A stretch of 64,000 nt of DNA from positions 24,043,913 to 24,107,912 of the forward strand of contig NC_068987.1 in the NCBI RefSeq assembly GCF_001194135.2. Reading direction: 5' to 3'. Of the stretch, positions 26,391-63,991 are shown in pieces. Source of the stretch: Octopus bimaculoides (taxonomy: Eukaryota). Below the pieces are notes generated by a model, which had not been told where the DNA came from, did no database searches, and was given only the letters and a program-made list of their open reading frames with translations. The position numbers were made by a program, and so were the translations under genes. Positions within the stretch are counted from its first letter, which is position 1; the number at the start of each line of letters is the position of its first letter.

Positions 26391-26656
26391 TTCATTCTGA
26401 TGGATGATAATAAAAATAAGACTGGGAAGATTGTTTTAGAAAGACATAAATATTACAATATGATATTTAATAATACAAAATATTCTTTAATAATTCAATT
26501 AACAAAACAATAGTATATAAACATGGCTTTCAAATATTTTGCATAATGTTTATAACATTACATTAACTGTCACACAGAAATTCCATTACGAAGTAATTAT
26601 ATATACAATTTCTTTTAAAATAATTCTACTGTTTTATCATTTGACTTTCTTTGGGA

Positions 26657-35415: not shown

Positions 35416-36519
35416 TTATTTGCGTACATGAACAGGTTTGTGACGGGTTAAACTTTGATTATCAGCATATGCCTTACCACAAATATCACAGCTGAATGGT
35501 CTTTCACCTGTGTGACCACGTACATGAAGTTTTAAATGACCTCTCTGAGAAAATGTTTTACTACAGATATGACAGTGGTATGGATTTTCACCAGTGTGAA
35601 TACGAACATGTTGAGTTAAATGACCATTCTGAGAGAATGTTTTCCCACATATATCACAGTGGTATGGTTTCTCACCAGTGTGCATGCGTATATGTCTAGT
35701 TAATCCAGTACTCTCAGAGAATGTTTTCCTACAGACATCACAGTGGTATGGTTTCTCTCCTGTGTGAACCTGTTTGTGACGAGTCAATTTATTATATTCC
35801 GAGAATGTTTTCTCACATATATCACAGTGGTATGGCTTCTCACCAGTATGAGTACGTTTGTGAACAGTCATATTGCCTCTCTGAGAGAATGTTTTCCCAC
35901 AGACATCACAGCTATATGGTTTTTCCCTTGTGTGAATGTATTTGTGTCTTTTCAGATAAGACCTTCGTGAAAATGTTTTAGCACAAATACCACATTGATA
36001 TGGTTTCTCTCCTGTGTGAGTTCGTTTGTGAAGAATTAATTTATCACTTTGAGAGAATCTTTTGCCACAGATATCACAATGATATGGTTTTTCACCTGAG
36101 TGAGTATACTTATGTGTAGTCAAATGACCTTGCTGAGAGAATGCTCTCCCACAAATATCACAGTGGTATGGTTTTTCACCTGTATGAATACGCTTATGCT
36201 TGGTCAAATTACTGCTGTCAAAGAAAGTTTTGTCACAGATTATGCATTGGTAAATTTTCTTATCTTTCTGAACATTTTTATGCAAAGACAAAGAGCTGGT
36301 TTTAGCAATTGTTTTACTATAAATTTTTAAATATTTAAGCTTTGAGCTTGTATGAAGTAATTTTTGCTTAAATAAGGTATCAGATTGTGCGAATGTTTTC
36401 ATATCATTGTCAAAGTAATATGATACCTTCTCTGTATCTTCATATGTCTGATAAGATATGTCACTGGATTCAGGCTCTGTTTGATCACAAGCCTGACTCT
36501 CACCCAGTTTATTCTCCAT
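35416..36519 (-). CDS. C2H2 zinc-finger protein ZNF5, ~89-aa leader plus 10 fingers, 367 aa; closest paralogue of ZNF4
   Basis: Intact ORF whose leader differs from ZNF4 at 6 of ~90 residues. It ends HKPVHVRK* with no trace of finger 11. Confidence 0.94.
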   Translation of the reverse strand: MENKLGESQACDQTEPESSDISYQTYEDTEKVSYYFDNDMKTFAQSDTLFKQKLLHTSSKLKYLKIYSKTIAKTSSLSLHKNVQKDKKIYQCIICDKTFFDSSNLTKHKRIHTGEKPYHCDICGRAFSQQGHLTTHKYTHSGEKPYHCDICGKRFSQSDKLILHKRTHTGEKPYQCGICAKTFSRRSYLKRHKYIHTREKPYSCDVCGKTFSQRGNMTVHKRTHTGEKPYHCDICEKTFSEYNKLTRHKQVHTGEKPYHCDVCRKTFSESTGLTRHIRMHTGEKPYHCDICGKTFSQNGHLTQHVRIHTGENPYHCHICSKTFSQRGHLKLHVRGHTGERPFSCDICGKAYADNQSLTRHKPVHVRK

Positions 36520-44545: not shown

Positions 44546-44662
44546 AATGCATTTAGTCAACCAGTGCTTTTTAATCACATAACCAAGTTAACAGAAAAAT
44601 TTTATTTTACTTTACTTCCCATTTTGCATTGCAAATGCAGCCCATCCTCTGTGTGTGTGTGT

Positions 44663-44739
44663 GTGTGTGCATGCTTGCATTTATGTGTGTGCATGCTTGC
44701 ATTTATGTGTGTGCATGCTTGCATTTATTTGTGTGCATG
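44663..44739. repeat. 22-bp minisatellite (gtgtgtgcatgcttgcatttat) x3 plus a partial unit
   Basis: Units start at 44663, 44685 and 44707. Confidence 0.9.
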
Positions 44740-45143
44740 TATATGTGTATATATAATGATGACAAATGTCTGTGTAACCAGAGTAGATAAAGTGAATCAT
44801 TTAAAAATATAACTACCATATATTTTTAATCATTAATAATTGTATAGAAAGGTTTATACATATAAATAAAGTTTTATTCTAAAACATTCATTTTCTTCAT
44901 ATTTACAATAATTTTCAACCTGATAAATGGGTAAAATGATAAGTGTAAATTTACATTCAGTTCTATTACCATGTTTTAGAACATTCTGGAAAAAATCTTT
45001 TAAAAAAAATGTGTAGTTTATGTTAATGAAAATATCATTTTTGTCCATTTTCATTGTATTATCTGTATCACAAAAATTCCCTTGTGACTTCATGACATAA
45101 TAATTTGTGATAAGTCTGCAAAATAATTCTATTCTTTTATTGT

Positions 45144-46355
45144 TTATTGTCCATGTGCCTTTCCTTTATGATGAGTCAAGCTCCTACTCTCAGAGTAAGT
45201 TTTACCACAAATATCACAATGATACGGTTTTACACCTGTGTGAACAGGTTTGTGACGATTTAAATTCTGATTGTCAGCATATGATTTACCACAAATATCA
45301 CAGCTGTATGGTCTTTCACCTGTGTGACCACGTACATGGAGTGTTAAATGACCTTTTTGAGAGAAGGATTTACCACAGATATCACAGTGAAATGGATTCT
45401 CACCAGTGTGAACACGCACATGTTGAATTAAATGACCGTGCTGAGAGAATGTTTTCCCACAGATATCACAGTGGTATGGTTTCTCACCAGTATGCATACG
45501 TATATGCTTAGTTAATCCACTGCTGGCAGAGAATGTTTTGCCACATATATCACAGGGGTATGGTTTCTCACCTGTGTGAATACGTACATGTTGAGTTAAA
45601 TGACCATTCAGAGAGAATGTTTTGCCACAAATTTCACAATGATACGGGCTGTCACCTGTGTGCACACGTACATGCCTAGTTAATGTACTATTGTTTGAGA
45701 ATGTTTTTCCACAGATATCACAGCAGTATGGGTTGTCACCTGTGTGCAGGCGTAGGTGTCTAGATAATATACTATTGTTTGAGAATGTTTTTCCACAGAT
45801 ATCACAATAAAATGGTTTATCTCCTGTGTGAACTTGTTTGTGATTAGTTAACTTATTACACACAGAGAAGGTTTCACCACAAATATCACAATGGTATGGT
45901 TTCTCACCAGTGTGTATACGTTTGTGAACAGTCAAATTACTTCTAACAGAGAATGTTTTCCCACATTCATCACAATGAAAAGGATTCTCACCTGTGTGAA
46001 TACGTATATGTTGAGTTAAATGACCGTTCTGAGAGAATGTTTTACCACAGGTGTCACAGTGATATGGTTTCTCACCTGTGTGCATGCGTATGTGTTTAGT
46101 TAATCCACTTTTATCAGTGAATCTTTTTCCACAAATATCACAGTGGTATGGTTTCTCACCAGTGTGCATACGTATGTGTGTGGTTAATCTACTACTTTCA
46201 GAGAATGTTTTACCACAGATATCACAGTGATATGGGTTGTCACCAGTGTGCACACGTACATGTTTACTTAATGCGCTATTGCCAGAGAATGTTTTCCCAC
46301 AGACATCACAGTGGAATGGTTTCTCACCCATATGAGTACCTTTGTAATTAGTCAT
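45144..46355 (-). CDS. C2H2 zinc-finger protein ZNF6, leaderless, 14 fingers, 403 aa
   Basis: The ORF starts at the Met of a truncated finger ([23 protein letters not shown]). An in-frame TAA lies just upstream of that finger. Confidence 0.92.
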   Translation of the reverse strand: MTNYKGTHMGEKPFHCDVCGKTFSGNSALSKHVRVHTGDNPYHCDICGKTFSESSRLTTHIRMHTGEKPYHCDICGKRFTDKSGLTKHIRMHTGEKPYHCDTCGKTFSQNGHLTQHIRIHTGENPFHCDECGKTFSVRSNLTVHKRIHTGEKPYHCDICGETFSVCNKLTNHKQVHTGDKPFYCDICGKTFSNNSILSRHLRLHTGDNPYCCDICGKTFSNNSTLTRHVRVHTGDSPYHCEICGKTFSLNGHLTQHVRIHTGEKPYPCDICGKTFSASSGLTKHIRMHTGEKPYHCDICGKTFSQHGHLIQHVRVHTGENPFHCDICGKSFSQKGHLTLHVRGHTGERPYSCDICGKSYADNQNLNRHKPVHTGVKPYHCDICGKTYSESRSLTHHKGKAHGQ

Positions 46356-46516
46356 AGTATCTCTTTTGGGGAATGTTTTTCCACAGACATCACAGGAGTA
46401 TAATCTATAATCTTTTTATAAACTTGGTTTCAATTTCACAGGAACTTAACCAATGTTATAAAAACAGTTAATCAAATGATTAAAAAACAGTTCTTCTGCG
46501 TCTTCTGTCTTTAAAA

Positions 46517-46591
46517 TCAGACAAATTTCTTGATATCTCTTGAATCAGCAATTCCCATCTCAATGTTAACACAGACTCTGAAGTAAAGAAC
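46517..46591 (-). promoter_or_regulatory. Putative splice acceptor and 13-codon uORF of ZNF6
   Basis: ttctttacttcag with AG at 46579-46578; uORF MGIADSRDIKKFV* at 46558-46517. Confidence 0.62.
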
Positions 46592-47134
46592 AATGAAAAA
46601 TAAAGAACAAGAAAATAATGTACAAAAAAAACAATGAAAAGTTAACGTAGAGGTTATTAAACTGAAGAGATTATCAAGAGAGGTTGATAGGCAGAATAAT
46701 AAAAATAAGAAAATATCTACAGAGGGAAGATGCAGTACTCTAGCTTTGTAATGTAAATGGATGATATAATGTGTGGATGAAGACTTTAGAAACAAGATGG
46801 TAGGCTGATTGAACTAACAAATGGCAAAGGCATACATATATAAAGTAGTGGGTTGAAAAAGTTTGGTTAACCAATATTGTTCCTGAAGTTACACAAAATT
46901 CTCTCAAAAGGTTACTTAAAAGATCTAAAATCAGGCAAGAGAGATAATACCTACAAGATCAGCAAATCAAAATTTTTAGGAAATACAATGCATTAAAAAT
47001 GTGAGTGGAGTTGGTCTTTGAAACCAACTGGTGAAAGTAACAAATGTTTGTCTTATTAATCCTCCTCAGTGAAGCATACTCAACTCAGCTGGCAACAAGA
47101 CTTAGTGTGTGTGTGTGCATATAGCCATAGATAT

Positions 47135-47805
47135 AACTGTGAGGTTAAGTTCACTTCACAACCATGTAGTTTCAGGTTCAGTCCCACTATACTTAGTGCA
47201 AGCATCATCTATTATAGCCCTGGGCTGATCAAAGCCTTTTCAGTGAATTTGGTAGAGGGAAAAACTGAAAAAAAGTCAGCTTTATATTTGTGCATGCATG
47301 CCTCTGTGTACATGTGTGTGCATCTATATGCAAGTGGGTGAGCATGCATGTGTGTGTGTGTCTCCTTGACATTGCATGCTAATTGTAAACAAATGTCACA
47401 ATCACACAAGCAGTTTTGTCTGTTTTCAATTTTCCTTGAAAACACGTCTGGACTTCTGTCACCTCTCTGCCATCTGAGTCATATTACCTCAAAAATTGGT
47501 ACCCATCTCAGAATACTGTGTACTTTTATCACTCATCCCTCTCATCACTATTGTTCATACCTCTCACTTTGTAAAAAGGCAAATGAGCAAGCAGAGATGT
47601 GGAGCTGTGAGATCCCTCTAGTCATGAAAAAGCACCCAGAATACGCTGTGAAGTGGTTAACGTTAAGAAGGGTAAGAAGTGTAAAAACCATGGCAAAGCA
47701 GACATTGCAGCCTGATACAATCTTCAGACCTGTTGGATCCTATCAAATCGTCCAACCTACGCCGGTGTGGAACGTGAACGTTAAATGATGATTATGTTGA
47801 TGATG
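47135..47805 (+). mobile_element. Degenerate composite SINE pieces (tRNA-like head and RTE-like tail)
   Basis: Head at 47135-47290, microsatellite, then tail remnants ending ggaacgtgaacgttaaatgatg near 47790. Confidence 0.5.
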
Positions 47806-48699
47806 CATACATGGTCAGTGTGATGTGATATTTGATTTTCACCTTGAAATAACTTTATAAGGTTACTGAATAATACATATGTTGCAATACTTCATCGTTA
47901 TCATTTTCACATTTTACTAGTAACAAGTTTGACAATGACTGAGGACGGCATTTCTAAACTGACTATCAGCGCCTGCTTCGATTTAGTTGGGAAAATACAC
48001 TCAAAAAAACTAGGGAACCTCAAAAGTACAGTGCACCTCCATTAATTAAACTAGATAAATTCAAGTTCTACCATAGAAAGTACTAAACAAGACAGTAATG
48101 CCTGAACATTGCGTTTTTGATTTAGTGGAGTGGTAGTTAATTAAAAATGTTGGATAGAGAAAGTAAACGACAGCAAACACCATCATAATAGAGAGAGATG
48201 CCGGGAAAACGTATAATGTAAGTTCTGTTGTTTATGACAATAACAAAATATACTTAGTTAGGTGCTAAAAACAGATGAAGGAAACGTGGGTCAAGCGAGT
48301 CTTTTATTTACTATCTCATATTCGAGGAGTTTATGACAGAACCAGTTTAAAACAGGCATATTCAGTAATACACAAGAGGCGATTGCCAAAATGCACAAAT
48401 TAAAAATACAATGACTTTTATGCAAAAAATAAAGGAGAGCAAATATGTTTTCAATCACTTTTCACAGACATTTTTACTAATAAGGTTAATATTTTTGATG
48501 TATAAAACACTTCTGCGCTTCAAGGTAGGTTGTTGTTTCATTAAAATGAATAAACACAAAATACAAGACAAACCTATATAATTATAAACAAACTGAATGT
48601 TCAAAATATATCGAGACTGACAGCGAGCTAATTCGATTGAAACGAAACTAAAATCTAAGAGAGCAAAACAAAGAGAATTTGTTATTATTGCAACAATCT

Positions 48700-49084
48700 A
48701 TCACAGATAGTTAACAAATACTGGAATGTCACCATGCATAATGTTAGCTAAATAGTTTCTAAAACTGAATATTGCTAATGTTTACATTTAAACAGATTAA
48801 ACCTGAACGTAAATCGCATCACACGATCAAAACATCATATTGTGGATTGTTACAAGAGACGTTTTCATTAGAAATAATTAGCTACTGAAAACACACCAAC
48901 TTACTGTTTTTTAATCTTTTTCTCATTATTTGGTGTTATAATATTGAGAGATAATTTGATCTATGGATCTATAGACACAATATACTTACTATCTGTCCAA
49001 TAAACCATCTTTACAGATTCACAGAACCCAAGTGATATACTTCCATGCAGACTTAATCAAATCTTCAGCCGTACTTTCGTAAAA
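48700..49084 (-). promoter_or_regulatory. Conserved upstream non-coding module, copy 5 (ZNF6 unit)
   Basis: cagattaaacctgaacgtaaatc...caacttactgttttt...aaatcttcaGCCGTACTTTCGTAAAA (49068-49084). Confidence 0.65.
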
Positions 49085-49202
49085 ACGGATCTCTCTCTCT
49101 TCTTCCTTTCTCTTAACCAGTACACCAATATTAAAATGTGTAGCTGAAATTTATTTCTCCAAGTGTCTATTGTGGTGTATGCGTGCGAGTAAAAGTAATT
49201 GG

Positions 49203-49325
49203 CTTACCTCGTTTTCCTTCTTTTGCACGAGTCTGTTCTGCGGTATCCGATCCTCGCGACCCGAAGAACACTAGAAATAGCAGCTGCTTCTCCCAACACC
49301 TAGACGATCGCTTGGCACGTTCTCA
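49203..49325 (-). promoter_or_regulatory. Candidate non-coding first exon and splice donor (GAG/GTAAG) of ZNF6
   Basis: CpG-rich ~120-bp segment ending in a consensus donor (GT at 49207-49206), ~120 bp upstream of the conserved motif. Confidence 0.45.
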
Positions 49326-49681
49326 ATCATCAAACAGATAGAGTACTTATGCTGTAATTGGGTGATCCTACTTATATCGAAGTTTTGCCCTGTAATTGTA
49401 TATTTCATGATTTCAGAGTTGCACTTTTCTTTCTATTTTAAGAGGGGTCAAAATTTTCGTCACATTACTGCGACCTGTCACTCACAAAGTTCCACTGCAG
49501 ATGTTTAAAAGCCCTTTTTTTCTCTCTCCCTTTCCCTTGTTATACTTACACAGATATAAATCTGTTGTACAGATGTTTGATCTTTTGGAACTAGTCACTT
49601 CTGGGTTCTAGTCTATACTGGCTTATCTATTGCAAATATCAGTTATGCACTATGGTGAAAACGTTATTAATCAAGGAATAG

Positions 49682-50045
49682 AGGTGCAGGTGTGGCTGTG
49701 TAGTTGAAACTTTTCTTCTCAAATACATGGTTTTGAATTTATCCTCATTGCATCACACTTTCGATAAGTGTCTTCTATTATAGCCCTGGGCCAACCAAAA
49801 TTTTGTGAGTGAATTTAGTAGATGCAAACTGAAAGAAGCCAGATTATCTATCTATCTATTTGTCTGTATTTTTTGTTGCTTTGTCTTGACATCACATGAT
49901 AGTTGTAAATGAGTGTCACTGTTATACAAGTAGTGTCATTCATTTCCAACATTCTGTGAAAACATGTTTGGTCATGGGAAAATATTACTTTACTTGGAAA
50001 CAGGTAAAGGTTGGTGAGAAGAAGGGCATCAGGCTATACAAAAGC
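49682..50045 (+). mobile_element. Composite SINE: tRNA-like head plus RTE-like tail, truncated at a mariner fragment
   Basis: ggtgcaggtgtggctgtgtagttg...aactgaaagaagcc...ggaaacaggtaaaggttggtgagaagaagggcatc. Confidence 0.7.
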
Positions 50046-50047
50046 TG

Positions 50048-50345
50048 TCACACCCGCTGTACTCTCCTGATTTGGCACCAACGGATTTCCACCTCTTTCA
50101 AATGCTATGCGCGAAGTTTCGTTCAATACTGATGCAAAATTGAGAGCTTGGTTGGATCAATTTTTCGAGTTGACATCGGGTGATTTCTACCAACAAGGTA
50201 TTGAAAATCTTGTTGAACGATGGGAAGAAGTTGTAAACAACAAGGGTGAATACATTCTTGATTAATTAGTTGTTATTTTTTATTAAACCTTTTAAAAAAT
50301 TTAGATTTAAAAAAAAATGGTGGGAACTTAGTTGCCAACCCAATA
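50048..50345 (+). mobile_element. Mariner transposon 3' fragment with right TIR
   Basis: HPLYSPDLAPTDFHLF motif, then ...LRAWLDQFF...DFYQQGIENLVERWEEVVNNKGEYILD*. TIR-like aacttagttgccaacccaa ends in TA. Confidence 0.88.
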
Positions 50346-50579
50346 CAAAAACCAAACTATATCCTCTTTAACTACAGACTGTCTCTTGTACTAATTTACA
50401 TGTAACTATCTATGATGTAATTACTTGACACTTGTATTTTCTTCTCCCAATCACATCTTTCTGGAAGTTAATGATGCTACATCAGTCCTGTACACCCTGA
50501 TAAACTACATGATGGATAGTTTAACATCAACCCAACCTCATGGTTTGAATACTGTAACAATCGTCATGTTAATTGTTTA

Positions 50580-51002
50580 TTGTGTGGTTAAGACATCTGC
50601 ATCCCAACCACATGGTTTCAGGTTCAGTCCAAGTGAGTGGCACCTTTGGCAATTGTCTTCTACTATAGCCCCAAGCTCACCAAAGCCTTGTATAAGTGGG
50701 TTTGGTAGAAAGAAACTGAAAAGAAACTTGTATGTATATATGTGAGTGTGTCTCCTAGCCTTGACATTGCATATTAATTGTAAATGACCATCACCATCAT
50801 ACAAGCAGTGTCCCTCACTTACAATCTTCCATGAAAATATGTCTGGTCAAAAGGAAATCTTATCTTACTTGGAAACCAGTGAGGACTAGCAACAGAAAGA
50901 ACATCTAGCCATACAAAATCTGCCTTAACAAATTCCATCTGACTTATGCAGGCATGGAAAAATGAATGTTAAAACAGTGATGATGATGATGATGATGATG
51001 AA
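50580..51002 (+). mobile_element. Composite SINE: tRNA-like head, (TG)n, RTE-like tail with (GAT)n end
   Basis: Same organisation as 8629-9050, ending gttaaaacagtgatgatgatgatgatgatgatg. Confidence 0.72.
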
Positions 51003-53215
51003 TCCTGAAAATGATTCAGAAATCAGCATTTTGTTATCAATGAATCTGGTATTTGCCATTTATTCTAATGCCTCCATTTTTTAAGAGCTTTCACATCATT
51101 GTATCTTGTAAACATGCTGTAAATATCCGAAGTTAGACGTCACTGGCATTAACAGCCATATCCAGTGGAAGAATCTCACTTGTCCACATTCTTATGCTAT
51201 GAACTGTTGTATTTTATGACTGATTGTAGTTTCCCAATTTTTGAATTGAGTTGCAAAAATCAAAATGACGATGCACATATTCATTCTTAATACACTCCAG
51301 TAGATTCTAACATGAACATACTAATTGCTATTGTATTTTGTCTACTGAGAACAACTTCTTTCAGACAATGTGTGTTCACTAGTTATTTCATCGTTTCATT
51401 CCTCAATAATACTTTTGTGTATTTCGAAGAAGAAGGGTGATTTGTTGTAAACAGTTTACTTTATTTGAAACAAGATATTTTTCAGATTATTGCATTCAAA
51501 AACTATGAAAAGAGAAGCAGAGTTATGATTTGGAAAAAAAAGAGATGATAGATATCTCTCAATCAATGGAAATAGAATTATCTATTTGGACCAGGGGTAA
51601 TGTAGTCTAGGTTGCAATCCAAAGGATCAATAAACACCTGAAACGATTTTAAGCATTAAAGGTGTTGAATTATGAGCAAATTGAATCTAGAAAAGCATGA
51701 TAATTTAAGGTTAAAGCTCACTAATTTCCAGCCAAATATCAATACAATAACTACTAGTATTCATCAAACATATTTCACAGTATACATCCCGTCTATGTCA
51801 ATATAATATGACTGGATTTTTATTTTTCAATTTTGTTGAGTATTTTCATTAAATATTTATTAAAAATGGGTAATAGCACAAAAGGAAGGAAGGAATTATT
51901 GTTTTTAAATCAAATTTTTATTAATTATACTTACAAATTCACATGAAAGGAGTCAATAAGTTATCAACTATTCAATGGAGGGATCAATGAAATAAGTTTG
52001 CTGACCCCTAATTTAGATAGAGGATTATAACATAATAGAATACACGACAGTATTAAAATATAACATGCTACAATTCAGTGACTAGTTGTATAATGACAGT
52101 AGGTGTGATATCTACAAAGCAGGTCAACAGGTGACAGACTGGTGAACACAAATATAAGCACTCCAGTGGTACACTGAAATTAATGGAGTAGGACAATTTT
52201 AAAAGGTAGCTATATGACCAAACTGGAGCCAAAAGGTCAAAGATAGACAATTATGGGTTAGGGCTGAGAGGTGTTTGTTAAGTTAGATCAATAAGTACCT
52301 TAATAATGATCACACTGACATGCCATGTCGATTTGGACATACTTTTCTCCCCAATGACAATGTAGTTCACATGGACATACCCTTTAACACTTATAACATT
52401 TAAACACTTCAACTTCATCAATCATATTCTGATAGCAACAGTAATGTAACATGCATTCTTCTGTGTCACACTTTTACTTTCTATCCTTAAAAGGGTCACT
52501 TAGCTTTTCAAACTTCATCCTCCTATTCACCTATTGTATACTGCTTTGCTCCAAGTCCTGCTCTAACTGTACTATTAGTCACTTACTTCTAACATGTTAC
52601 AATTTGACAATATCCAGTGCTCTGTGATGCTATAAGTCAAAATTGTATTTCTCAAATCCCATTGAGAGATATTTGTCAGCACGTTTAGATTTTCTTTCTC
52701 CATTTGTATCTCTTCTTTTTATATTATTTAACATTCTGCATGCAATAATCAGCAAGACAGAATGTTTCAATTAAAGTTAACAGTTTACAGCAAATCATCC
52801 TACTTCTAAATACACAAACTTATTCTTGCAGAAACAAATGATGAAATAGTTTTTGTAGATTATTAAAACTTTAATTAAAAGACAGAGAAATACATCAGTC
52901 ACAAAATAGAACAATTCATAGCATTAAAATGATGACAAATGTCTGTGTAAGCAAACTAGATACTAAAGTTAATCCAAAATGAATCATTGAAAAATGTAAT
53001 AACCATGTAGTGGAGAGATTCTTTTATTATAACACTATGCACTGCTTCTTATTTACAATTACCTTCCATGCTTCAGTTCTATCATCATGTAGAATGTGTG
53101 AGAAAAAAGAAAATCTCCAGTTTATATTTGTCCATTTTCCAAAAAATTCCTTTGTATTATCTGTCCCATAGAAATTCCCTTTTGTCTTCATGAGGTAACA
53201 GTTCATAAAACTTCT

Positions 53216-53944
53216 TCAGATTAATTCTTTTATTGCTTGCTGTCCATGTGCCTTTTTTTTATGATTAGTCAAACTCCTACTCTCAGAGTAAGTTTTACCA
53301 CAAATATCACAATGATATGGTTTTACACCTGTGTGAACAGGTTTGTGACGATTTAAATTCTGATTGTCAGCATATGATTTACCACAAATATCACAAGTGT
53401 ATGGTCTTTCACCTGTGTGACCACGTACATGGAGTGTTAAATGACCTTTCTGAGAGAAGGATTTACCACAGGTATCACAGTGAAATGGATTTTCACCTGT
53501 GTGAATACGTACATGTTGAATTAAATGACCATTCTGAGTGAATGTTTTATCACATATATCACAGTGATATGGTTTCTCACCAGTGTGTATGCGTACATGT
53601 TGAGTTAGATGAGTATTCACCGAGAAGGTTTTACCACAGATTTCACAGTGGTATGGATTGTCACCTGTGTGCATGCGTATGTGTCTAGATAAATTACTCT
53701 TGCCAGAGAATCTTTTTCCACAAATATCACAGTGGTATGGTTTCTCACCAGTGTGCATGCGGATGTGCTGAGTTAATCTATTACTGACACAGAATCTTTT
53801 ACCACAGATATCACAGTGGTATGGGTTATCACCAGTGTGTATGCGTATGTGTCTAGTTAATGCACTACTGCCAGAGAATGTTTTCCCACAGATATCACAA
53901 GAGTATGGATTCTCACTACCCTGAGCACCTCTGTGATTAGTCAT
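53216..53944 (-). CDS. C2H2 zinc-finger protein ZNF7, leaderless, 8 fingers, 242 aa
   Basis: The ORF starts at the helix Met of a decayed finger (CYFNTCRKTFF*RGN-MTNHRGAQ). Confidence 0.9.
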   Translation of the reverse strand: MTNHRGAQGSENPYSCDICGKTFSGSSALTRHIRIHTGDNPYHCDICGKRFCVSNRLTQHIRMHTGEKPYHCDICGKRFSGKSNLSRHIRMHTGDNPYHCEICGKTFSVNTHLTQHVRIHTGEKPYHCDICDKTFTQNGHLIQHVRIHTGENPFHCDTCGKSFSQKGHLTLHVRGHTGERPYTCDICGKSYADNQNLNRHKPVHTGVKPYHCDICGKTYSESRSLTNHKKKAHGQQAIKELI

Positions 53945-54540
53945 GTTACCTCTTCAAAAGAATGTTTTCCTACAAGTATTAAAATAGCATGGCTTTTCAC
54001 TTGTGTAAATAGGATTGTGTCTATTTAATGGATATTCTAAAATATGCTTACCACAAATACCATTTTCATAGCCAAACATTAATTTATCAAATGCAGCAAA
54101 TATTTTTCCACAGATATTGCATTGATATGGTTTCTCACATAAATGAATATATTTGTGTGTAGTCAAATGACTTTGCTGAGAGGACACTCTTCCACAAATA
54201 TCAAAACAGTATAACTTTTCACCAGTATAGATACATTTATGCTTGGTCAAATTACTGATGTAGGATAAAGTTTTACAAGAGATTATGCCCTGATAAAATT
54301 TCTTATCTTTCTGGACATCATTATGCAAGAACAAAATTTGTTTTTGATAATTACTTAACTATTCATTTTAAAACATTTAAGCTTTTTAACTTGTATGAAA
54401 AACCAAAAAAACTTTCTTTAATAAAGGATTAAACTATATAAATGTTTTTTTACTGGTATACAAAAGACAAAATTTGTATCTGTGTAGCAACTAGATTCTG
54501 ATTTAGCTCGATCATGTTACATATCTCTATCACAATGTGC
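53945..54540 (-). pseudogene. Decayed 5' part of ZNF7 (old leader and fingers 1-5)
   Basis: ORF 54334-53954 (TTG start) aligns with [14 protein letters not shown]...[12 protein letters not shown] of ZNF4/5 but has lost many Cys residues. It is in frame with ZNF7, separated by one TGA at 53956-53954. Confidence 0.85.
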
Positions 54541-54633
54541 TTATAATCTTAATTCAAACATTAATGCAACTTCCTCAAGATGTTATAGATGTGTTACTTG
54601 TAATCTATTCTTCATAATACCAGTTTTCTTTCT

Positions 54634-54714
54634 TCAAAATCTGGTAAAGTTCCTTAAATATACTGAATTCCACAATACCATCTCATTGTCACCACAAAAC
54701 CTGAAATAAAAAAT
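54634..54714 (-). promoter_or_regulatory. Putative splice acceptor and 15-codon uORF of ZNF7
   Basis: ttttttatttcag with AG at 54702-54701; uORF MVLWNSVYLRNFTRF* at 54681-54634. Confidence 0.62.
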
Positions 54715-55002
54715 ATAAGGTAAAAAGGACAATGTAAATGACAGTTATTAGAGAAATAGGGCTTGACTAGATTGAATGAGAGAATAAAAGGGGAAGAGCA
54801 GAAAAACAATATTAAGGATATCCATACATAACATCAGTTATGATGTGATGTATGGACAAGAACTTTTGAAAGGAAATAATGAGACACACAGATGTAGAAA
54901 GAAATCAAGAATTCTTTTTGTGGGAGTATACACATATAAATAACAAACAGTGTTGTCATCCACATAGAAGGTTGAAAAAAAAAGCAATGAAAATTTAACA
55001 CA

Positions 55003-55235
55003 GTGCCCCTAGACTGGCTCCTGTGCAGGTGGCACGTAAAATACACCATTTTGAGCGTGGCCTTTGCCAGTACCGCCTGACTGGCCTTCGTGCCGGTGGT
55101 ACGTAAAAGCACCCAGCTGTAGAAACTCTGCCAAATCAGATTGGAGCCTGGTGTAGCCATCTGGTTCACCAGTCCTCAGTCAAATCGTCCAACCCATGCT
55201 AGCATGGAAAGCGGACGTTAAACGATGATGATGAT
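55003..55235 (+). mobile_element. RTE-related 3' repeat with (GAT)n tail, young copy with an internal deletion
   Basis: Near-identical to the reverse complement of 28762-29002 but missing ~39 bp between cacc and cagctgtagaaa. Confidence 0.8.
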
Positions 55236-55505
55236 TTGAAGAGAGTGGGGACTAGACCAGAACAATAACAATGTTACAATAAAAAATACAGAAAATACTG
55301 TGAAGGTGAGACACAATAGTGTGTAAATGGATGATGCATAGATGAGGTAATAATGAAGTATACAGACGTAGAAAAACTGATAAAATTTTTATTTATTTAT
55401 TTTGTGTGAGTGGACTATAATATAAATAGGTAACTCGGGGACACCATCAATTTACTAAAGAAAACATACCCATCAAAACTAGGCAACAACAATACAGCGA
55501 TGTAC

Positions 55506-56088
55506 NNNNNNNNNNNNNNNNNNNNNNNNNNNNNNNNNNNNNNNNNNNNNNNNNNNNNNNNNNNNNNNNNNNNNNNNNNNNNNNNNNNNNNNNNNNNNNN
55601 NNNNNNNNNNNNNNNNNNNNNNNNNNNNNNNNNNNNNNNNNNNNNNNNNNNNNNNNNNNNNNNNNNNNNNNNNNNNNNNNNNNNNNNNNNNNNNNNNNNN
55701 NNNNNNNNNNNNNNNNNNNNNNNNNNNNNNNNNNNNNNNNNNNNNNNNNNNNNNNNNNNNNNNNNNNNNNNNNNNNNNNNNNNNNNNNNNNNNNNNNNNN
55801 NNNNNNNNNNNNNNNNNNNNNNNNNNNNNNNNNNNNNNNNNNNNNNNNNNNNNNNNNNNNNNNNNNNNNNNNNNNNNNNNNNNNNNNNNNNNNNNNNNNN
55901 NNNNNNNNNNNNNNNNNNNNNNNNNNNNNNNNNNNNNNNNNNNNNNNNNNNNNNNNNNNNNNNNNNNNNNNNNNNNNNNNNNNNNNNNNNNNNNNNNNNN
56001 NNNNNNNNNNNNNNNNNNNNNNNNNNNNNNNNNNNNNNNNNNNNNNNNNNNNNNNNNNNNNNNNNNNNNNNNNNNNNNNNNNNNNNNN
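55506..56088. other. Assembly gap (N run)
   Basis: Run of N. Confidence 1.
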
Positions 56089-56519
56089 TCACTGAGATGC
56101 AACACAATTTTGTCAGTGAACAGGTCGCGGTCTCAGAGCGAGGAAAATATTTTGACAAATTAAATTTAAATGTTGAAGTGAATCTGACGGCTTTTGTGTG
56201 TTATTTTAAATGGCTTATAAACACCTTCCACGCTGCAATTGTTTACAATAAGTTTCTGTTCAAAAATTTTTTACCATTGTTTATTAATATTTTAAGTTGA
56301 ATACAATGTTTCTATTGTTGTTTAAAGTTCTTCTATATCGTTAAATTGAAACTAAAATATCCACATTGAACACAAGATAAACGTAAATATTTAAACATAT
56401 ACAGATAGATGCCTCGTCAAAACACAAAACACTTTGGATGAACAAAACATACCGGGATCCAGAACAAACTGATATGGTTGAAAAGAGATTCAATGACAAC
56501 AGAGAAAAAACAGGATTTG

Positions 56520-57124
56520 TTATTAATTATGACAATCTGTCACAAATGATACTTGAAAGTTGCCATGCTTAATGTTTGGCACATAGTTTCTGAAACTGAA
56601 TGCTGTTAGTATTTAAATTCAATCGAGATTAAGCCTGAATGTAAATAACACCTGACTACCAATAGATCATAATATGGATTATTACAACAGAGAAGTTTCT
56701 TGTACTAGAAATATTAAAATAATTAACAACTGACAAAGCATCAACTTAATGTTTTCTCTGTATTTGGTGAGATAATCAGATATATGGAGATATGTAGAGA
56801 TATAATATACTCACTATATGTCTAGTCAAGCAATTCCACTGATTTCACAGAACCTTAGCAATAAACTTTAATGCAAACCTAGTTCATCAAATCTTCAGCC
56901 GTATTTTCGTAAAAAAAAAGACTTATTTTCTTTTTTCTCATTATGTTGTGCCGTAACACCGAGTGATGGTCTGATCTGTGAGTGTATGCTTATATATATA
57001 TATATTTAGAGAGATAGAGATACTCAGTTTATGTGCAGTCAACCAACTTTATTTTCACAGAATCTACGCGGCATACTTTAATGCCAACTTAATTCATCAA
57101 ATCATCAGCCGCGCTTTCGTAAAA
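56520..57124 (-). promoter_or_regulatory. Conserved upstream non-coding module, copy 6 (ZNF7 unit), with its last ~130 bp duplicated
   Basis: gagattaagcctgaatgtaaataacacc... with the motif at 56898-56914 and again at 57108-57124. Confidence 0.65.
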
Positions 57125-59471
57125 ATAGATACGTCTCTATTTTTAACTTTCTTCTCTTTGATTTTTATTTAGTTCTTTTTCTCTCTCTTTTATCTTCCTT
57201 TGTTAGGAAAAATTCTATTTTTGTGTATTAGCTACATGAACGATGTCATCATTCAAATAATATTTTTATCAAAATGGATGCACATACAAGAAAACAGAGC
57301 AAGTTGATCAATTCTTTGTGAGTGAATTTGACAGATGCAGAAGGCCATTGTATATGTATATGTGTGTCAGCCATTTAGGTTTGTTTATGTCTCTATAATC
57401 TAGCAGTGTCACACCAATAAAATACTAACTAGACTTAGAAAATAAGAACTGGGGTCAATTTGGTCAACTTAACCATTTAGGGCAGTACTCCATCATGGGC
57501 GTTGACAATCTGGTGTGTTTGTTTGCCAGCCCAGGTTTCGCTGCTCATCAAGCTGAGAAGAGTAAGCTATCGACCACTCTCTAACTGATTTGTAGTCCAA
57601 CCTGTGGGTGTGGAGACCCCCAGCCTACATCCCTGCTCACAGCTCTTGGGCAGAGATGGCTATCAACAAATGCAAACCCTGTTAGTCAGAGTGGCTGTTC
57701 CAGTGCATCTTCCTCACCATCCTCCTGGGCAATACCTTTCCATTTTGTCCACCAGGACCATGAGGCAGACTGACAAGTCTTATAAACATAGCAACAAAAA
57801 TGGCATTAAATAAAAACCAAGTTTATATACAACTGTTTGTTTGGTTATCTATGACCGAGATGTATCTCATACTTTCGCACTGTGTTAGTGTGTAAAAGAC
57901 TATATTTACATTTTGCTTGCTGTACGAAAGCAAGGACAGGAGAAACAATGTCTGTCACTAATTAATATTACTTTACTTTTTCCAAAAGTTGACAAATTGG
58001 TGAAATTGTAAGGGAATCTTAAAAAAATGCATTGTGGTATTTGTTTCAACTCTTTACATTCTGAGATCAAATCCTGCTGAGGTTATATTGCCTGTCATCT
58101 GCCCAAGTTTGATAAAATAAAGTACCAGTTAAGTTCAATGGTACTGACTGACCTATCATCTCAAAATATTTGACTTTGTACTTAAATCAGAAACTATTTT
58201 CCTTTTCTGGTAGCATAAACGACCATTTCAAATCTGTTCCAACATATATTTTGACTTGATCAGCTGAGTTGTCAGATTTTCAAAAGTCCAAGTCAGAACA
58301 CTAAAACATATTATTGTATTTAGTCAGATATTGATATAATTTACAATGTGGACACACCCTTTGAAAACAAAGTGACTGGTTTCAGTCTTAATGAATCTCT
58401 TCACAGTAACCAGTGTCGGTATATATTTATAATGGACATGAAGGTTTAGATACCTGTGGAGTATCTCCCTCTTCTTCTCCCATTATAATTGTTTTGTAGT
58501 TTCAAGAAGCTGGAACGGGTCACTGATTTGTGATGTCTGTGCGAAGTGAGGTGATGAGAATGGCTCCTTAGTACACCACACGGTCGATACAATAAATATA
58601 AATAGAACAATGCATATATGTGCCAGAGGGAAATAAGAGACACAACTGGGTAGAACGTTTAAGAGATTTATTGATATGTTAACATGTGTGATTGTGTGTG
58701 CGTCATATTTACAGAATAATTGGCAAGCCATCATAAGAAGATGTATGCGTATGTAGAAAGATGTTGACATTAGGACAAATGGTGGCGACGGAGATGGAGG
58801 TCACTGAATGCTGCTGGACAAAGTTGATGAGTCTCCATGTGGCTGCTGTTGTGTTGTCGCTGGAAATGGCGGTGTCTTCTGTGGTCAGTGGTTAGACTTT
58901 AAAATGCCTGAAACCAAAGACATCGAGATGAGGAAAAGTTAGGTTTTTTTATAAGGAGTTGTGGGCTCAGCTGATGTAGAAAACAGGCTTGTCATACGTG
59001 ACCTTATTTGAAGGCTGTGGTTGGTTGGGTTGCATATTGGCACGCGATAGAGCAAGAGACAAATTGTGTCAATACCGACCAATCAGAGTAGTGGACACAA
59101 CAGGGTCCAAAATGTGGTCAAATGCTAGCGGTTATCTACTACATTCGTATGTATATATAATAGAGAGGAGAGGAATTTCACTCAAGTGTACACGACATAT
59201 TTACTAATAAACTGTGTCAACTAATATATAAATGTATATAAGCTTTTTTGTTCAGTTTGAATTATTACTGGTTGATGTCTGAAGGGAAAACATGGGCAGG
59301 GAAGGAGTTCTAGATATAATTTTTTTTAATACAAGTTTTTGTGTGAGATACAGGGTGGTTTGAGTGACTGAAACGATGTTTGGCAGTTCAGAAGAGCAGA
59401 GGATGCTATATAGCAAAGAAATAAAAAGAAGCTATAATATACTAGTGAGTTATCACATGCAATGTGAATAA

Positions 59472-59620
59472 ATGTAGTGGTTAGAATGCTGAATTCATGA
59501 TGGTAAGATTGAGGTTTTGATTTATGGACCAGGTGATGTGCTGAGCAAAATATTTAATTTCACATTGCTCCAGTCCACTCAGCTGGCAAAAATGAGTAAT
59601 CCAGCAATGGACCAGCATCT
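59472..59620 (+). mobile_element. tRNA-derived SINE head, same family as 20141-20462
   Basis: gtagtggttagaatgctg...tttcacattgctccagtccactcagctggcaaaaatgagt. Confidence 0.7.
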
Positions 59621-60144
59621 TGTTTAGAGATGGAGGGGATATATATATATGCCACACAATCCAAGGAACCAGTTTTATGAGCCTATGGCTCAGGATGAAC
59701 ATTTGATCTTCTCTAGTTCTTTTAATTTTTTATCATAATCATGTGGATGAGACTAATGACTTTTATAACCAAATTGTAAGTAAATTTAATTAGCTTCTTA
59801 ACAAGATTTCTACTATTTCTACTCTACACATATTAGTAATACTCTGAATTTAATTATTTTAAACCCACAGGTCCACATAGTTACCAGGTCTAGATACATC
59901 AGTGGTGATTTTAGGTCAACAAGGATACTCATCTTGATGTTGTTTCTGACTCAAAAAAAATGAACGAGGTCCAGGTTATCAACATACAGGGAACTCTGAC
60001 ATGTAACTAGATGTAAATTCCATTGTAATTACCACAATGAACTTTGAGTCTAAATATACATAATATTCTGAACTAGTTTACTGACTCTGCATCTTGCTTA
60101 TGGCAACATTATAAGTGTGTGTGCATTTGTGTGTGATGACATAT

Positions 60145-60505
60145 ATATATATATATCCTTCCAGTGTGAATGGTTTTTTATACAATGCCATTTTAAAAAT
60201 CCTGTAAATAATAATAATGGTATTTTTATATAATCTTAGAACTTATGGCAATCAGTGTGCAATGACCAAGGAAGATAGTCTGATAAAGGGGCATATAAGT
60301 CCTCGACTGAAAAAAGAAGGCTTTCCTATCCAATATATATATCCTTCCGGTACAAATATTTTTTATATGGCACCATTTTTACAATCCTATAAATAATAAT
60401 AATGGTATTTTTATATAAGCTTAAAGCTTATGGCGGTCAGCGTGCAATGACAAAGGAAAATAGTCTAATATAAGCCCTCAACAGAAAAAAGAAGGCTTTT
60501 CTATC
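60145..60505. repeat. Direct tandem duplication, two diverged units with a ~186-bp period
   Basis: atatatatccttcc...aaataataataatggtatttttatataa...aaaaaagaaggcttt occurs twice (atcctt at 60155 and 60341). Confidence 0.85.
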
Positions 60506-60959
60506 TCCTGCTTTGGCATGGTTTCTATGTCAACCATTTTACAGTGTACAGGGTGCTTATTATGTGGCACCGGCACTGGTACTTTTTATGTAGTACCAAC
60601 ACCAGTAGAGGCACCAAGTAACTTGCAAGATGAATACTTATTAGCAGGGAGAGGGAGTGAAAGGTTAGAGAATAATAGGACAAAGATAAGAGTCTTACCA
60701 TGAAGAAGAGATAGAGAGAAAGATAGAGACAGTCAGATTGAGAGAGGGGGAGGGGAATAGATGGTGTTGAAGATACATTGGGATCTGCCTGTAAGTATAA
60801 GCAGTACAAAGGGGACAGAAAGGCATGCTCCATTAGAGTGTGAAGGGAGCAGCATGGAAGACGGATTTTAAATGATGATGTGCTGGAGCAAAATTTGACA
60901 GCTTGCATGAAAGGAAAAGAAAACAATATTCTGTCAAAAAAAATAAAAGTACTTTAAAA

Positions 60960-61719
60960 AATAACAACTAGATAATGGTTGGAAGGTGACAGTTTACTCA
61001 AAGTAGCCATCCTCAGTTTCTATCACAGCAGCCACAAGATGGCTCTGGAACCTGGTGTACGTATTGCTCAGTGTCTCTGGGAAGATCTTTAAATACCTCC
61101 TTGATCTTAGCCACCAGTTCAGCTGTGGTATTGTAGGCAGAGCAGTTGGTGTCTTTCTCGACCATACCCCACACAAAGTATTCCATGGGATTACAATTAG
61201 AGAATTAGGAGGCGAGAAGTTGGGGCTGATAAAGTCATAGAAATTCTCTGACAACCACTTTTGACTCTTTCTGAAGGTATAACAAAGAGCTGAATCCTGC
61301 TGCCACACACATGGCCTTCCAGCAGCTTCACATAGCCATCTGAAATGAGCCTAAAGCCCTGATCAAATATGTGGGTATGAATTCCAGTGTGTAGATGCAA
61401 TTAGAACGTCTGCTGTGTCCCTTCTTGCTGGCCATGGCTTTGTAGCCTCTGTTGCAGCTGTCCAGGTCTTACAACTTTTACAGAGCACTGAGCAGCAGTT
61501 ATGATGCTGGCATTTTGATACCTGGTGCAAATCATTATGATACATGTAACTCTTTTTCAATATTCAGATGGCTTCCAATCTCCCATGTCAGCTAACTTTT
61601 TCTTAACAACTTTAATGTTAATGCTTTCCAGTGCTGTTGATTGTTTACAAATTCATCAAGCTGTTCCTGAAAAAAAAAAGGTGACATAAAAAAATCATCA
61701 AATTTAGCTAAGCACCCTG
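60960..61719 (-). mobile_element. Tc1/mariner-superfamily transposon remnant, internally deleted
   Basis: WQQDSALCYTFRKSQKWLSENFYDFISPNFSPPNS followed by a frameshifted CNPMEYFVWG, and HIFDQGFRLISDGYVKLLE. The left end begins cagggtgcttagctaaatttg. Confidence 0.8.
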
Positions 61720-62343
61720 TGTATGTGTGTGTGCTTTTACTAACGAAGGCTTGCCTCTCTTTTAATAGTTTTTGACATTTTGAATGCCATACTGTACAAA
61801 ATAACTAGTTTTATTTAAGGTAAAGCATTTATATCAAATCATCCTACTTCCAAATACTTCTAATAGAAAGAAACGGTGTAATAGTTTTTATAGATTATTG
61901 CAACTTTACTTGAAAGACAGAAAAATATATCAATCACAAAATAGAACAGTTCATAGCATTAAAATTATGACAAATGTCTGTGTAAACAGAGTGGATATTA
62001 AAGTTAATAATTTAAAAATATATATTTTTGATCTTTAATAATCTCATAGAGAGGTCTATACGTTTATGTAAATTTCCTTTTATAAAACATTAAACTGTTT
62101 CATATTTACAATGTTTTAGCCAAATTAGGTCAAAATGACATGTAAGTCTATATTCCGTTCCATTGCCATGTTGAACATTCTGGAAAGAAGTTTTTAAAAA
62201 GTATGTAGTTTATGTTTGTTAGAGACAAACATTGTTATGAAAACATAGTTCTTATCCACTTTCTGTAATGTTCCCCAAAAATTTCATTGTATTATGCCTC
62301 ATAGAAATTTGCTTGTGAATTTATGAAGTTTTTCAAAATGATT

Positions 62344-63234
62344 CTATTCTTTTACTGTTACTTGTCCATGGGCCTTTTTTTTATGATGTCTCAAACTCCT
62401 ATTCTCAGAGTAAGTTTTACCACAAATATCACAATGATATGGTTTTACACCAGTGTGTACAGGTTTGTGACGGTTTAAATTCTGATTGTCAGCATATGAT
62501 TTGCCACAAATATCACAAGTGTATGGTCTTTCACCTGTGTGACCACGTATATGAAGTGTTAAATGACCTCTCTGAGAGAAGGATTTACCACAGGTATCAC
62601 AGTGAAATGGATTCTCACCTGTGTGAATACGTACATGTTGAGTTAAATGACCATTCTGAGAGAATGTTTTCCCACAGATATCACAGTGGTATGGCTTCTC
62701 ACCAGTGTGTATGCGTACATGTTGAGTTAAATGACTATTGTCAGAAAACGTTTTACCACAGATTTCACAGTAGTATGGGTTGTCACCAGTGTGCACACGT
62801 ATATGCTTAGTTAATGAACTATTGCCAGAGAATGTTTTACCACAAATATCACAATGGTATGGCTTTTCTCCAGTGTGTACACGTATGTGTTGAGTTAAAC
62901 CACTTCTGTCAGAGAAACTCTTTCCACAAATATCACAGTTGTATGGTTTTTCTCCAGTGTGCATGCGTATGTGTCTAGTTAATCTATTACTGTCACAAAA
63001 TTTTTTTCCACAGATATCACAGTGGTGTGGATTATCACCAGTGTGCATGCGTACATGTCTTGTCAATGCACTGTTACCAGAAAATGTTTTTCCACAGGTA
63101 TCACAAGGGAATGACTTCTGTCTTATGTGAACCTGTTTGTGTTGAGTCAGACTATTACAGACAGAGAATGTTTTCCCACATATATCACAGTGATATGGTT
63201 TCTCACCTGTGTGAGTACGTTTGTGATTAGTCAT
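62344..63234 (-). CDS. C2H2 zinc-finger protein ZNF8, leaderless, 10 fingers, 296 aa
   Basis: The ORF starts [13 protein letters not shown] at the helix Met of a decayed finger (...EIFSEGGK-MTN). Confidence 0.91.
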   Translation of the reverse strand: MTNHKRTHTGEKPYHCDICGKTFSVCNSLTQHKQVHIRQKSFPCDTCGKTFSGNSALTRHVRMHTGDNPHHCDICGKKFCDSNRLTRHIRMHTGEKPYNCDICGKSFSDRSGLTQHIRVHTGEKPYHCDICGKTFSGNSSLTKHIRVHTGDNPYYCEICGKTFSDNSHLTQHVRIHTGEKPYHCDICGKTFSQNGHLTQHVRIHTGENPFHCDTCGKSFSQRGHLTLHIRGHTGERPYTCDICGKSYADNQNLNRHKPVHTGVKPYHCDICGKTYSENRSLRHHKKKAHGQVTVKE

Positions 63235-63281
63235 TTTACCTCCTTCAGAAAATATTTCTGCATACCATGCTGATAACTTTT

Positions 63282-63324
<43 letters not shown>

Positions 63325-63800
63325 GTGTGTGTGTATACAGTTAATTTACCTTTCTGCAAGAAACTTTTCTCACAGATTTCAGTGATGATTTCTCACCTGA
63401 ATGAATATATTTGGATTTAGTCAAATACCTTACTGTGTAATTGTTCTACCATAGATATCACAGTAGTTTGGCTTTTCACCAGTATGAACACATTTATGCT
63501 TGGCCAAATTATTGTTGTCAGAGAAAATTATGGCAAGATTATGCATTGGCAAGCTTTGTATTTCTGAACATTTTTACAGAGACAGCTGTTTTTAGCAACT
63601 GATGTACTGTGAATCCTAATAGGTTTGAGTTGGTATGAAGTGTTCTATTATGAATTATAAAAATTTTGATCTGGTATGAAGTAATTTTTGTTTAAATAAG
63701 GCTTTAGATTATGTGAATACTTTCTTCTTGATGTTTTTGTGATGTGATTTATTCTGTACACCTACACATGACAGATTCTGTATGTTACCATGCTTCATGT
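63235..63800 (-). pseudogene. Decayed 5' part of ZNF8 (old leader and early fingers), split by a microsatellite
   Basis: Remnants such as ...TKHKCVHTGEKPNYCDIYGRT... and KQKLLH-like sequence with stops and frameshifts; (TA)n(TATG)(TG)n at 63284-63337. Confidence 0.8.
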
Positions 63801-63976
63801 CTCAGTTGCAATATGTTTACAGCCTTAAATTATATTTCAAAGTCACTTATTTGAGGTTATAAAGAACAGCCACTTGTGTACTTCATGTCATAATGTATAT
63901 CTTCTGTCTTCAAAACCGGACAGATTTCTTTTAAATAAAAGGAATCTATCGTTACCATTTCAATGTCACCAGAAAA

Positions 63977-63991
63977 CCTGAAATAAAGAAT
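63977..63991 (-). promoter_or_regulatory. Putative splice acceptor of the ZNF8 terminal exon
   Basis: tattctttatttcag with AG at 63979-63978; flank matches the ZNF4 and ZNF7 units. Confidence 0.6.

Follow-up and report, generated by a model that had tools for sequence, protein, structure and literature searches.

A clade of 5'-truncated C2H2 zinc-finger paralogues probably restarted at a finger methionine in Octopus bimaculoides

Three zinc-finger genes in a 64-kb stretch of Octopus bimaculoides DNA, referred to here as the window, have open reading frames (ORFs) that begin within the helix of a finger, which raises the question of whether these are genes that survived the loss of their 5' ends or the transcribed remains of genes. 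The window is AT-rich (~34% G+C) and carries eight long ORFs of Krüppel-type C2H2 fingers, seven of them on the minus strand. Its positions were matched by exact look-up to CM046607.1 (GCA_001194135.2) at ~24.04-24.11 Mb. All coordinates given below are window positions, and the features lie on the minus strand unless stated otherwise. The analyses indicate that the three genes, ZNF6, ZNF7 and ZNF8, are probably a small clade of 5'-truncated C2H2 paralogues that restarted at the methionine of finger 5 after deletion of the start codon.

Shared start methionine and decayed leaders

Alignment of the DNA of the 5' regions with MAFFT revealed that the ATGs of ZNF6, ZNF7 and ZNF8 align with the Met codon of the RGNM motif in finger 5 of ZNF2, ZNF4 and ZNF5 (..SQRGNMTVH..; 35869-35871 in ZNF5, 27158-27160 in ZNF4 and 16735-16737 in ZNF2). 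This agrees with the original prediction, made from the sequence of the window, that the three genes start at the equivalent of an unusual finger Met of these paralogues, and the in-frame strings that it had read before the Met (PKRDT-M, *RGN-M and EGGK-M) were found exactly. The seven minus-strand genes have 78 intact fingers, of which 75 carry Leu at helix position +4 and three carry Met, and Met at this position is limited to finger 5 of ZNF2, ZNF4 and ZNF5. The replacement of the following Val by Asn (the MTN state) is common to ZNF6, ZNF7 and ZNF8. The common start of the three genes is one inherited state and not three coincidences. By its design, an ORF listing gives whichever ATG comes first after a stop, and the part that is not due to chance is the sharp shift of evolutionary regime found there.

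Each of the three ORFs is composed of a 13-residue head, which is the rest of a dead finger 5, and an array of intact fingers. They are located at 45144-46355 in ZNF6 (403 amino acids; head MTNYKGTHMGEKP and 14 fingers), at 53216-53944 in ZNF7 (242 amino acids; head MTNHRGAQGSENP and 8 fingers) and at 62344-63234 in ZNF8 (296 amino acids; 10 fingers), and public gene calls on CM046607.1 already start the 403-, 242- and 296-residue products at the Met in question. All are built of tandem C-x2-C-x12-H-x3/4-H units with TGEKP-like linkers and are thus of the C2H2 (Krüppel) type; Pfam assigned zf-C2H2 (E = 3e-49) and zf-H2C2_2 (E = 3e-69) to ZNF7. The zinc ligands are intact throughout the three arrays (128/128), and no stop or frameshift was found in their combined 2,823 nucleotides (nt), every lesion being upstream of the Met. 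The earlier statement that the 8-14 downstream fingers bear no disabling change is thereby borne out.

The sequence between the splice acceptor of the terminal exon and the Met has decayed to a different extent in each gene. The ZNF6 leader (46356-46577) contains an element that follows the acceptor, a deletion junction at ~46381-46420 and the front half of the dead finger 5 (46368-46400), with both Cys kept, a His changed to Tyr and an in-frame TAA at 46416-46418; its deletion extends from ~160 nt past the acceptor to the start of finger 5. In ZNF7 (53945-54700), the conserved element is followed by a junction shared with ZNF8 (~54506-54527) and by a decayed leader and fingers 1-5, where a 126-codon open frame (53954-54334), homologous to the end of the leader and to fingers 1-5, has lost 10 of 20 ligands and ends at a TGA (53954-53956). 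The ZNF8 leader (63235-63977) has the conserved element, the shared junction (~63780-63803) and a broken remnant, in which fingers 3-4 have given way to a (TA)n(TG)n microsatellite (63283-63339) and an in-frame TAA is found at 63283-63285. Compared with ZNF5, 27% of aligned sites differ in the ZNF7 and ZNF8 remnants, with 7 frameshifting gaps in ZNF7 and 14 in ZNF8. The original prediction had described these regions correctly as mostly open in ZNF7, broken by a microsatellite in ZNF8 and nearly all deleted in ZNF6. Its reading of them as three stages of decay did not hold, since the three states are better understood as having arisen neutrally and in parallel from a single event, with another deletion added, than as a temporal series.

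The nature of the first event is indicated by the junction in ZNF7 and ZNF8, across which the two genes are collinear (GAGAYATGWARCATGRT). Relative to ZNF1, ZNF2, ZNF4 and ZNF5, this junction lacks ~370 nt that comprise the distal 5' untranslated region (UTR), the start codon and the opening 17-20 codons of the ORF; the counterpart in the intact ZNF4 lies at 27752-28118, with the start codon at 27808. ZNF2 has Met at residue 1 and next at residue 235, the finger 5 Met, with none between, while position 40 carries an extra Met in ZNF4 and ZNF5 and Lys in ZNF7, ZNF8 and ZNF2. With the start codon deleted and the finger 5 Met being the next in-frame ATG, all three ORFs therefore begin there without any special step. 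Consequently, the proposal that an internal Met had been co-opted was right as to where the ORF begins, while the co-option itself gives way to a default, in which the in-frame ATG next in line served once the original start had been deleted. The larger deletion of ZNF6 covers the junction and masks whether the first deletion was inherited. ZNF6 nevertheless belongs to the same clade, nearest to ZNF7, according to the MTN state, the C-terminal module (89-98% identical in nucleotides between the genes, all three of which retain this constant module as originally claimed) and the pairwise synonymous distances (0.23 for ZNF6-ZNF7, 0.31 for ZNF7-ZNF8 and 0.44 for ZNF6-ZNF8). Protein homology searches were uninformative: the full ZNF8 query returned mostly generic zinc-finger proteins from all animals, the C-terminal module gave only 5 weak matches, and an exact-sequence cluster look-up gave no match.

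The history proposed for the clade starts from an ancestral gene in which a non-coding exon 1 would have been joined to a long terminal exon, the latter with a 425-500-nt 5' UTR, the start ME[EN]KL, a 90-residue leader of degenerate fingers and 10-12 fingers. The deletion of ~370 nt within this exon would have removed the distal UTR and the start codon together with the first 17-20 codons, and the ORF would have restarted by default at the finger 5 Met, which occupies helix position +4 in place of the usual Leu. The sequence 5' of this Met would then have turned into 5' UTR and decayed neutrally, a second deletion taking most of it in ZNF6. The predicted products would be proteins with an unstructured head of 13 residues and 8-14 intact fingers that keep the constant C-terminal fingers of the family. 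We infer the deletion to have been the first event and the products to be DNA-binding proteins.

Other genes of the cluster have also lost or rearranged parts of their coding sequence. In ZNF1 (6276-8223), the leader was lost a second time and independently. The ancestral start MEEKLCE... (ATG at 7713) is retained there, but its frame is closed by a stop after 24 codons, and a Thr-to-Met change (ATG at 7514) ~20 codons upstream of finger 1 provides the new start of an intact ORF with 14 fingers. The 3' ends of ZNF4 (26657-26720) and ZNF5 (35416-35440) are without the last finger (..HKKKAH) kept by ZNF2, ZNF6, ZNF7 and ZNF8, and an apparent frameshifted remnant of it is found at the ZNF4 terminus; these two leader-intact genes are therefore truncated at the opposite end. 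Within ZNF6, residues 126-181 (45810-45980) repeat fingers 5 and 6 in intact form (SNLTVHKRIH, with Leu at +4, followed by NKLTNHKQVH), which points to duplication within the gene or to unequal crossing over of a truncated with a full-length copy.

Selection upstream and downstream of the methionine

The original prediction had named a comparison of selection on the two sides of the Met as a check. For the remnants, ancestral codons were inferred from ZNF2, ZNF4 and ZNF5, and changes private to ZNF7 or ZNF8 were counted. These amounted to 21 synonymous and 66 nonsynonymous changes in ZNF7 and to 25 and 82 in ZNF8, or 0.20-0.24 substitutions per site. The nonsynonymous fraction (148/194 = 0.763) did not differ from the 0.757 expected under the remnants' own mutation spectrum (P = 0.93), showing that the remnants have been neutral since the split of ZNF7 and ZNF8. 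Of the changes common to both remnants, 8 are synonymous and 12 nonsynonymous (ratio 0.34), a lean toward synonymous sites that a stem branch reaching back before the deletion would be expected to give. Plain NG86 estimates of the ratio of nonsynonymous to synonymous rates (omega) gave 0.46-0.58 for the remnants and were replaced by these branch-specific counts with a mutation-spectrum-corrected expectation.

For the arrays, seven orthologous fingers (189 codons) were aligned and changes private to one gene were counted. The own branches of ZNF6 (16 synonymous, 15 nonsynonymous; omega-like ratio 0.29; P = 7e-4) and ZNF8 (22 and 13; 0.18; P = 1e-6) are under purifying selection. The ZNF7 branch gave 7 synonymous and 14 nonsynonymous changes (0.62; P = 0.2), and the three arrays together 45 and 42 (0.29; P = 2e-8). 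The expected contrast was thus obtained, with neutral remnants upstream, constrained arrays downstream and an equivocal branch in ZNF7. Pairwise NG86 omega was 0.16-0.40 for the arrays and 0.11-0.30 for the first two fingers past the head. At the rates of stops and frameshifts seen in the remnants, an array would remain free of lesions with a probability of 5e-7 in ZNF7 and 6e-14 in ZNF8, and ligands were lost at 21 of 40 positions in the remnants versus none of 72 in the arrays of the same two genes (P = 5e-12).

Variation was also examined within the species, where four DNA runs yielded 18 variable positions in 19 kb, two of them in the ZNF7 ORF, which are too few for a ratio of nonsynonymous to synonymous polymorphism (pN/pS). 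One is a G>A change at 53935, seen in one DNA run, that replaces His4 of the head with Tyr and gives the MTNY state found in ZNF6; the other, G>A at 53891, is synonymous and is present in RNA runs too.

Exon structure and transcripts

Every minus-strand zinc-finger gene of the window has an upstream conserved polypyrimidine tract with CAG, followed by a conserved element of ~150 nt with stops in all three frames. The CAG site is the acceptor of the long terminal exon, and RNA contigs show its use in ZNF2, ZNF4, ZNF6, ZNF7 and ZNF8. The genes of the cluster thus share one layout, in which a non-coding exon 1 is joined through the common acceptor to a long terminal exon that holds all of the coding sequence. 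In the intact genes ZNF4 and ZNF2, with acceptors at 28303 and 17864, the contigs run unspliced from there through the ME[EN]KL start codon.

In ZNF6, a GT..AG intron (46578-48989) is removed by a joint from 46577 to 48990 found in two RNA runs. The 3' part of its non-coding exon 1 lies at 48990-49072 and may reach ~49223; this region (48988-49085) is 76% similar to exon 1 of ZNF7, and the contigs are uninterrupted over 46221-46577. The GT..AG intron of ZNF7 (54701-56814) is spliced from 54700 to 56815 in RNA contigs of four runs, and the contigs place the non-coding exon 1 at 56815-57028, where 57028 is the minimum 5' extent. The contigs of this gene are uninterrupted over 53793-54698, raw-read depth is zero beyond 54708, and raw reads ending at 54700 bear the last 25 nt of exon 1. 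The terminal exon of ZNF8 starts at 63977, where RNA contigs, which span 63329-63977, show a splice; its exon 1 lies beyond the window, and a homology search of the adjoining 5 kb did not locate it. Contigs of ZNF6 and ZNF7 continue unspliced from the acceptor into the array, and no hidden intron that would excise the remnant was found in the RNA contigs or raw reads of these two genes. Contig depth over the 5' regions is ~10-40 and of the same order in the truncated (ZNF6, ZNF7 and ZNF8) and intact (ZNF2 and ZNF4) genes.

The original prediction would have been overturned by cDNAs that splice an upstream coding exon into the array. The exon found spliced in the RNA contigs is non-coding; it joins the acceptor 222-756 nt 5' of the Met, with 5, 16 and 19 in-frame stops between acceptor and Met in ZNF6, ZNF7 and ZNF8, respectively, and a coding upstream exon was rejected on these grounds. 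The three genes are a leaderless, finger-only subfamily, as had been claimed, with ORFs that begin at the finger 5 Met and with the same transcription and splicing as their intact paralogues. Editing of the ZNF7 TGA from adenosine to inosine was also considered, and no T>C was seen at 53954 in raw reads, where depth is low.

An assembly gap (55506-56088) lies within the ZNF7 intron. The spliced RNA skips it and no reading frame crosses it, and the gap was rejected as a source of frame problems. DNA contigs approach it from either side through very high-copy repeats. The regions 55092-55728, 59551-60187 and 50000-51270 reach k-mer depths of up to ~7e5 in DNA and RNA runs, as high-copy repeats do, and the first of these contains the start of the gap and was probably its cause.

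Further features were observed around these exons. In the exon 1 region of ZNF7 (56843-57125), the last ~75 nt are tandemly duplicated (57125-57053 versus 56915-56843; 81% identity), with a (TA)n run between the copies. The non-coding exon 1 of ZNF4 (29921-30731) has at least 812 nt, with an alternative internal splice (30104 to 30776) in one run, and together with 495 nt in the terminal exon it makes a very long leader rich in upstream ATGs (uATGs) in an intact gene. Many backward joints from 47361 to 44650 in raw RNA reads arise from a 22-nt satellite TGTGTGTGCATGCTTGCATTTA (3.5 copies) and TG runs at 44650-44739 and 47344-47361 and most likely reflect a cross-mapped dispersed repeat rather than circular RNA. 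The long plus-strand ORFs at 45107-45511, 62439-62810 and 26539-26988, with repeated HRYHSxMVSH, are antisense shadows of the 84-nt finger period and non-genic.

Alternative explanations and known systems

The main rival explanation, which we consider unlikely, is that ZNF6, ZNF7 and ZNF8 are transcribed but untranslated pseudogenes, their arrays looking intact and constrained only through divergence that preceded the loss of the start and through conversion from functional paralogues that repeatedly erases lesions. Several observations weigh against functional truncated genes. The load of uATGs in the terminal-exon leaders is heavy and undepleted in ZNF7 (17, with 15.9 predicted from composition) and ZNF8 (12, with 13.0 predicted); moreover, an upstream ORF overlaps the main ATG in ZNF6 and ZNF8, and one ends 9 nt before it in ZNF7, which argues against efficient initiation by scanning at the MTN ATG. 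Constraint on the own branch of ZNF7 is not significant and is compatible with neutrality, and the head of this gene is decaying and polymorphic. Synonymous divergence falls to 0.17-0.24 in the last four fingers versus 0.4-0.9 in the first, so that the arrays may have been shaped by gene conversion, which the high identity of the last three fingers among the three genes could also reflect. The ZNF8 contigs are continuous from the acceptor only as far as the microsatellite, and orthologues to date the events were not recovered, the RNA contigs of three other organisms from the same study giving only generic finger matches of 35-50 nt. Lesions in the last exon should escape exon-junction-dependent (nonsense-mediated) mRNA decay; the mRNAs of ZNF6, ZNF7 and ZNF8 persist because all of their coding sequence is in the last exon, where no such decay is expected, and expression alone is therefore no proof of function. 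However, the start deletion is common to ZNF7 and ZNF8, and over the period in which their remnants gained the neutral substitutions counted above, both arrays remained without stop or frameshift. Private changes in ZNF6 and ZNF8 are strongly biased toward synonymous sites, finger number and order differ among the arrays (8, 10 and 14), and the C-terminal module is 80-87% identical to that of any intact gene in the window, where no conversion donor is visible. The arrays thus lack the marks of pseudogenes, since disabling lesions are absent, evolution is non-neutral in ZNF6 and ZNF8, with the ZNF7 branch equivocal at 0.62, and the transcripts are normally spliced. As for the uATGs, the ZNF6 leader has 2, and the intact ZNF4 and ZNF2 bear 8 (in addition to the long exon 1) and 3, respectively; leaders rich in uATGs are therefore normal for the family.

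The constraint on the first finger after the head means that translation must begin upstream of that finger. A start other than the MTN ATG, such as a near-cognate codon lying between the nearest in-frame stop and finger 1, codon 9 of ZNF6 or reinitiation after the ZNF7 upstream ORF, has a slim chance. It would fit the open codons between the nearest in-frame stop and the ATG (20 in ZNF6, 3 in ZNF7 and 16 in ZNF8), the second Met of ZNF6 at codon 9 and the free evolution of the head (6 nonsynonymous and 0 synonymous branch-specific changes). Yet only three codons are open in ZNF7, and the MTN ATG, the sole ATG in the stop-to-finger bracket of ZNF7 and ZNF8, is the only one common to all three brackets, with A at -3 throughout. 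Judging from the selection on the arrays, ZNF6, ZNF7 and ZNF8 would be translated from this codon. It is also very doubtful that the leaderless proteins are antagonists, as the original prediction had proposed, which would bind at the sites of paralogues with a leader, or pair with these, while lacking an effector function of the leader. Contact residues in the last three fingers of the module are equal or close to those of ZNF5 (QGHQ, QGHL and DQNR versus DQSR), making partial overlap of specificity conceivable; the leader of intact genes evolves under moderate constraint (omega 0.38-0.43), and expression is similar as judged by contig depth. On the other hand, the leader resembles degenerate fingers, and Pfam searches recognised no domain in isolated leaders and no KRAB domain (PF01352) in these, ZNF5 or ZNF7. 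The other 5-11 fingers differ from those of ZNF2, ZNF4 and ZNF5 in number and contact residues, making competition for whole sites unlikely, and the independent loss in ZNF1 suggests that the leader is simply dispensable. It is improbable that the leaderless ZNF6, ZNF7, ZNF8 and ZNF1 form a selected class, with candidate competition or pairing with leader-bearing paralogues through the C-terminal three-finger module and restart as a recurrent route to antagonists.

Albertin and colleagues reportedly described lineage-specific tandem expansions of C2H2 zinc fingers in octopus in 2015. The genes studied here, close paralogues clustered on one Octopus chromosome, belong to such an expansion, which is very large and partly species-specific in O. 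bimaculoides (PMC12513265) and with which a UniProt match agrees. The likeness covers tandem Krüppel-type fingers, TGEKP linkers, location on one chromosome, a multi-exonic structure with the array in one exon, and expression in RNA sequencing; gene structure, 5' truncation and start shifts are not described in that work, and are resolved here for a three-gene subclade. The subfamily provides a clean case of a zinc-finger gene surviving N-terminal loss, with a deletion, a next ATG in a finger helix and a decaying leader beside a kept array. It also provides the exon structure of this octopus family, in which exon 1 is non-coding, the acceptor is conserved and the terminal exon carries a long leader rich in uATGs. 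ORF-based counts of octopus zinc-finger genes include such leaderless derivatives, and if these are common and translated, they would bear on the diversification of the very large C2H2 repertoire.

Effector-less paralogues and isoforms, such as those without KRAB, occur in the KRAB zinc-finger protein clusters of vertebrates. As in the octopus genes, the N-terminal non-finger part is lost, the array stays open and constrained, and finger numbers vary among tandem paralogues; however, the octopus leader has neither KRAB nor another recognised effector domain, and it was lost when the start codon was deleted within the terminal exon, whereas the vertebrate genes lose or skip an upstream coding exon. 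Truncated factors made from a downstream AUG are known in GATA1s (mutations in exon 2) and in C/EBP-beta LIP and C/EBP-alpha p30 (leaky scanning). These resemble ZNF6, ZNF7 and ZNF8 in losing or bypassing the canonical start, in beginning at the next AUG in frame and in keeping the DNA-binding part, but they are isoforms of single genes or disease alleles for which translation and antagonism have been demonstrated, while the octopus state is fixed in duplicated germline genes and its translation is deduced from selection. Dominant-negative Ikaros isoforms are similar in that N-terminal fingers are missing and C-terminal fingers are shared with full-length forms, and they differ in that dimerisation through the C-terminal fingers has been demonstrated for Ikaros. 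Compared with these systems, ZNF6, ZNF7 and ZNF8 are a real but ordinary subfamily of 5'-truncated paralogues, the product of a type of event that is well known, and as it stands expected, in fast-evolving tandem families. What is new here is the specific subclade, its initiating deletion, its exon structure and the clean change from neutral to constrained sequence at a Met within the helix of a finger.

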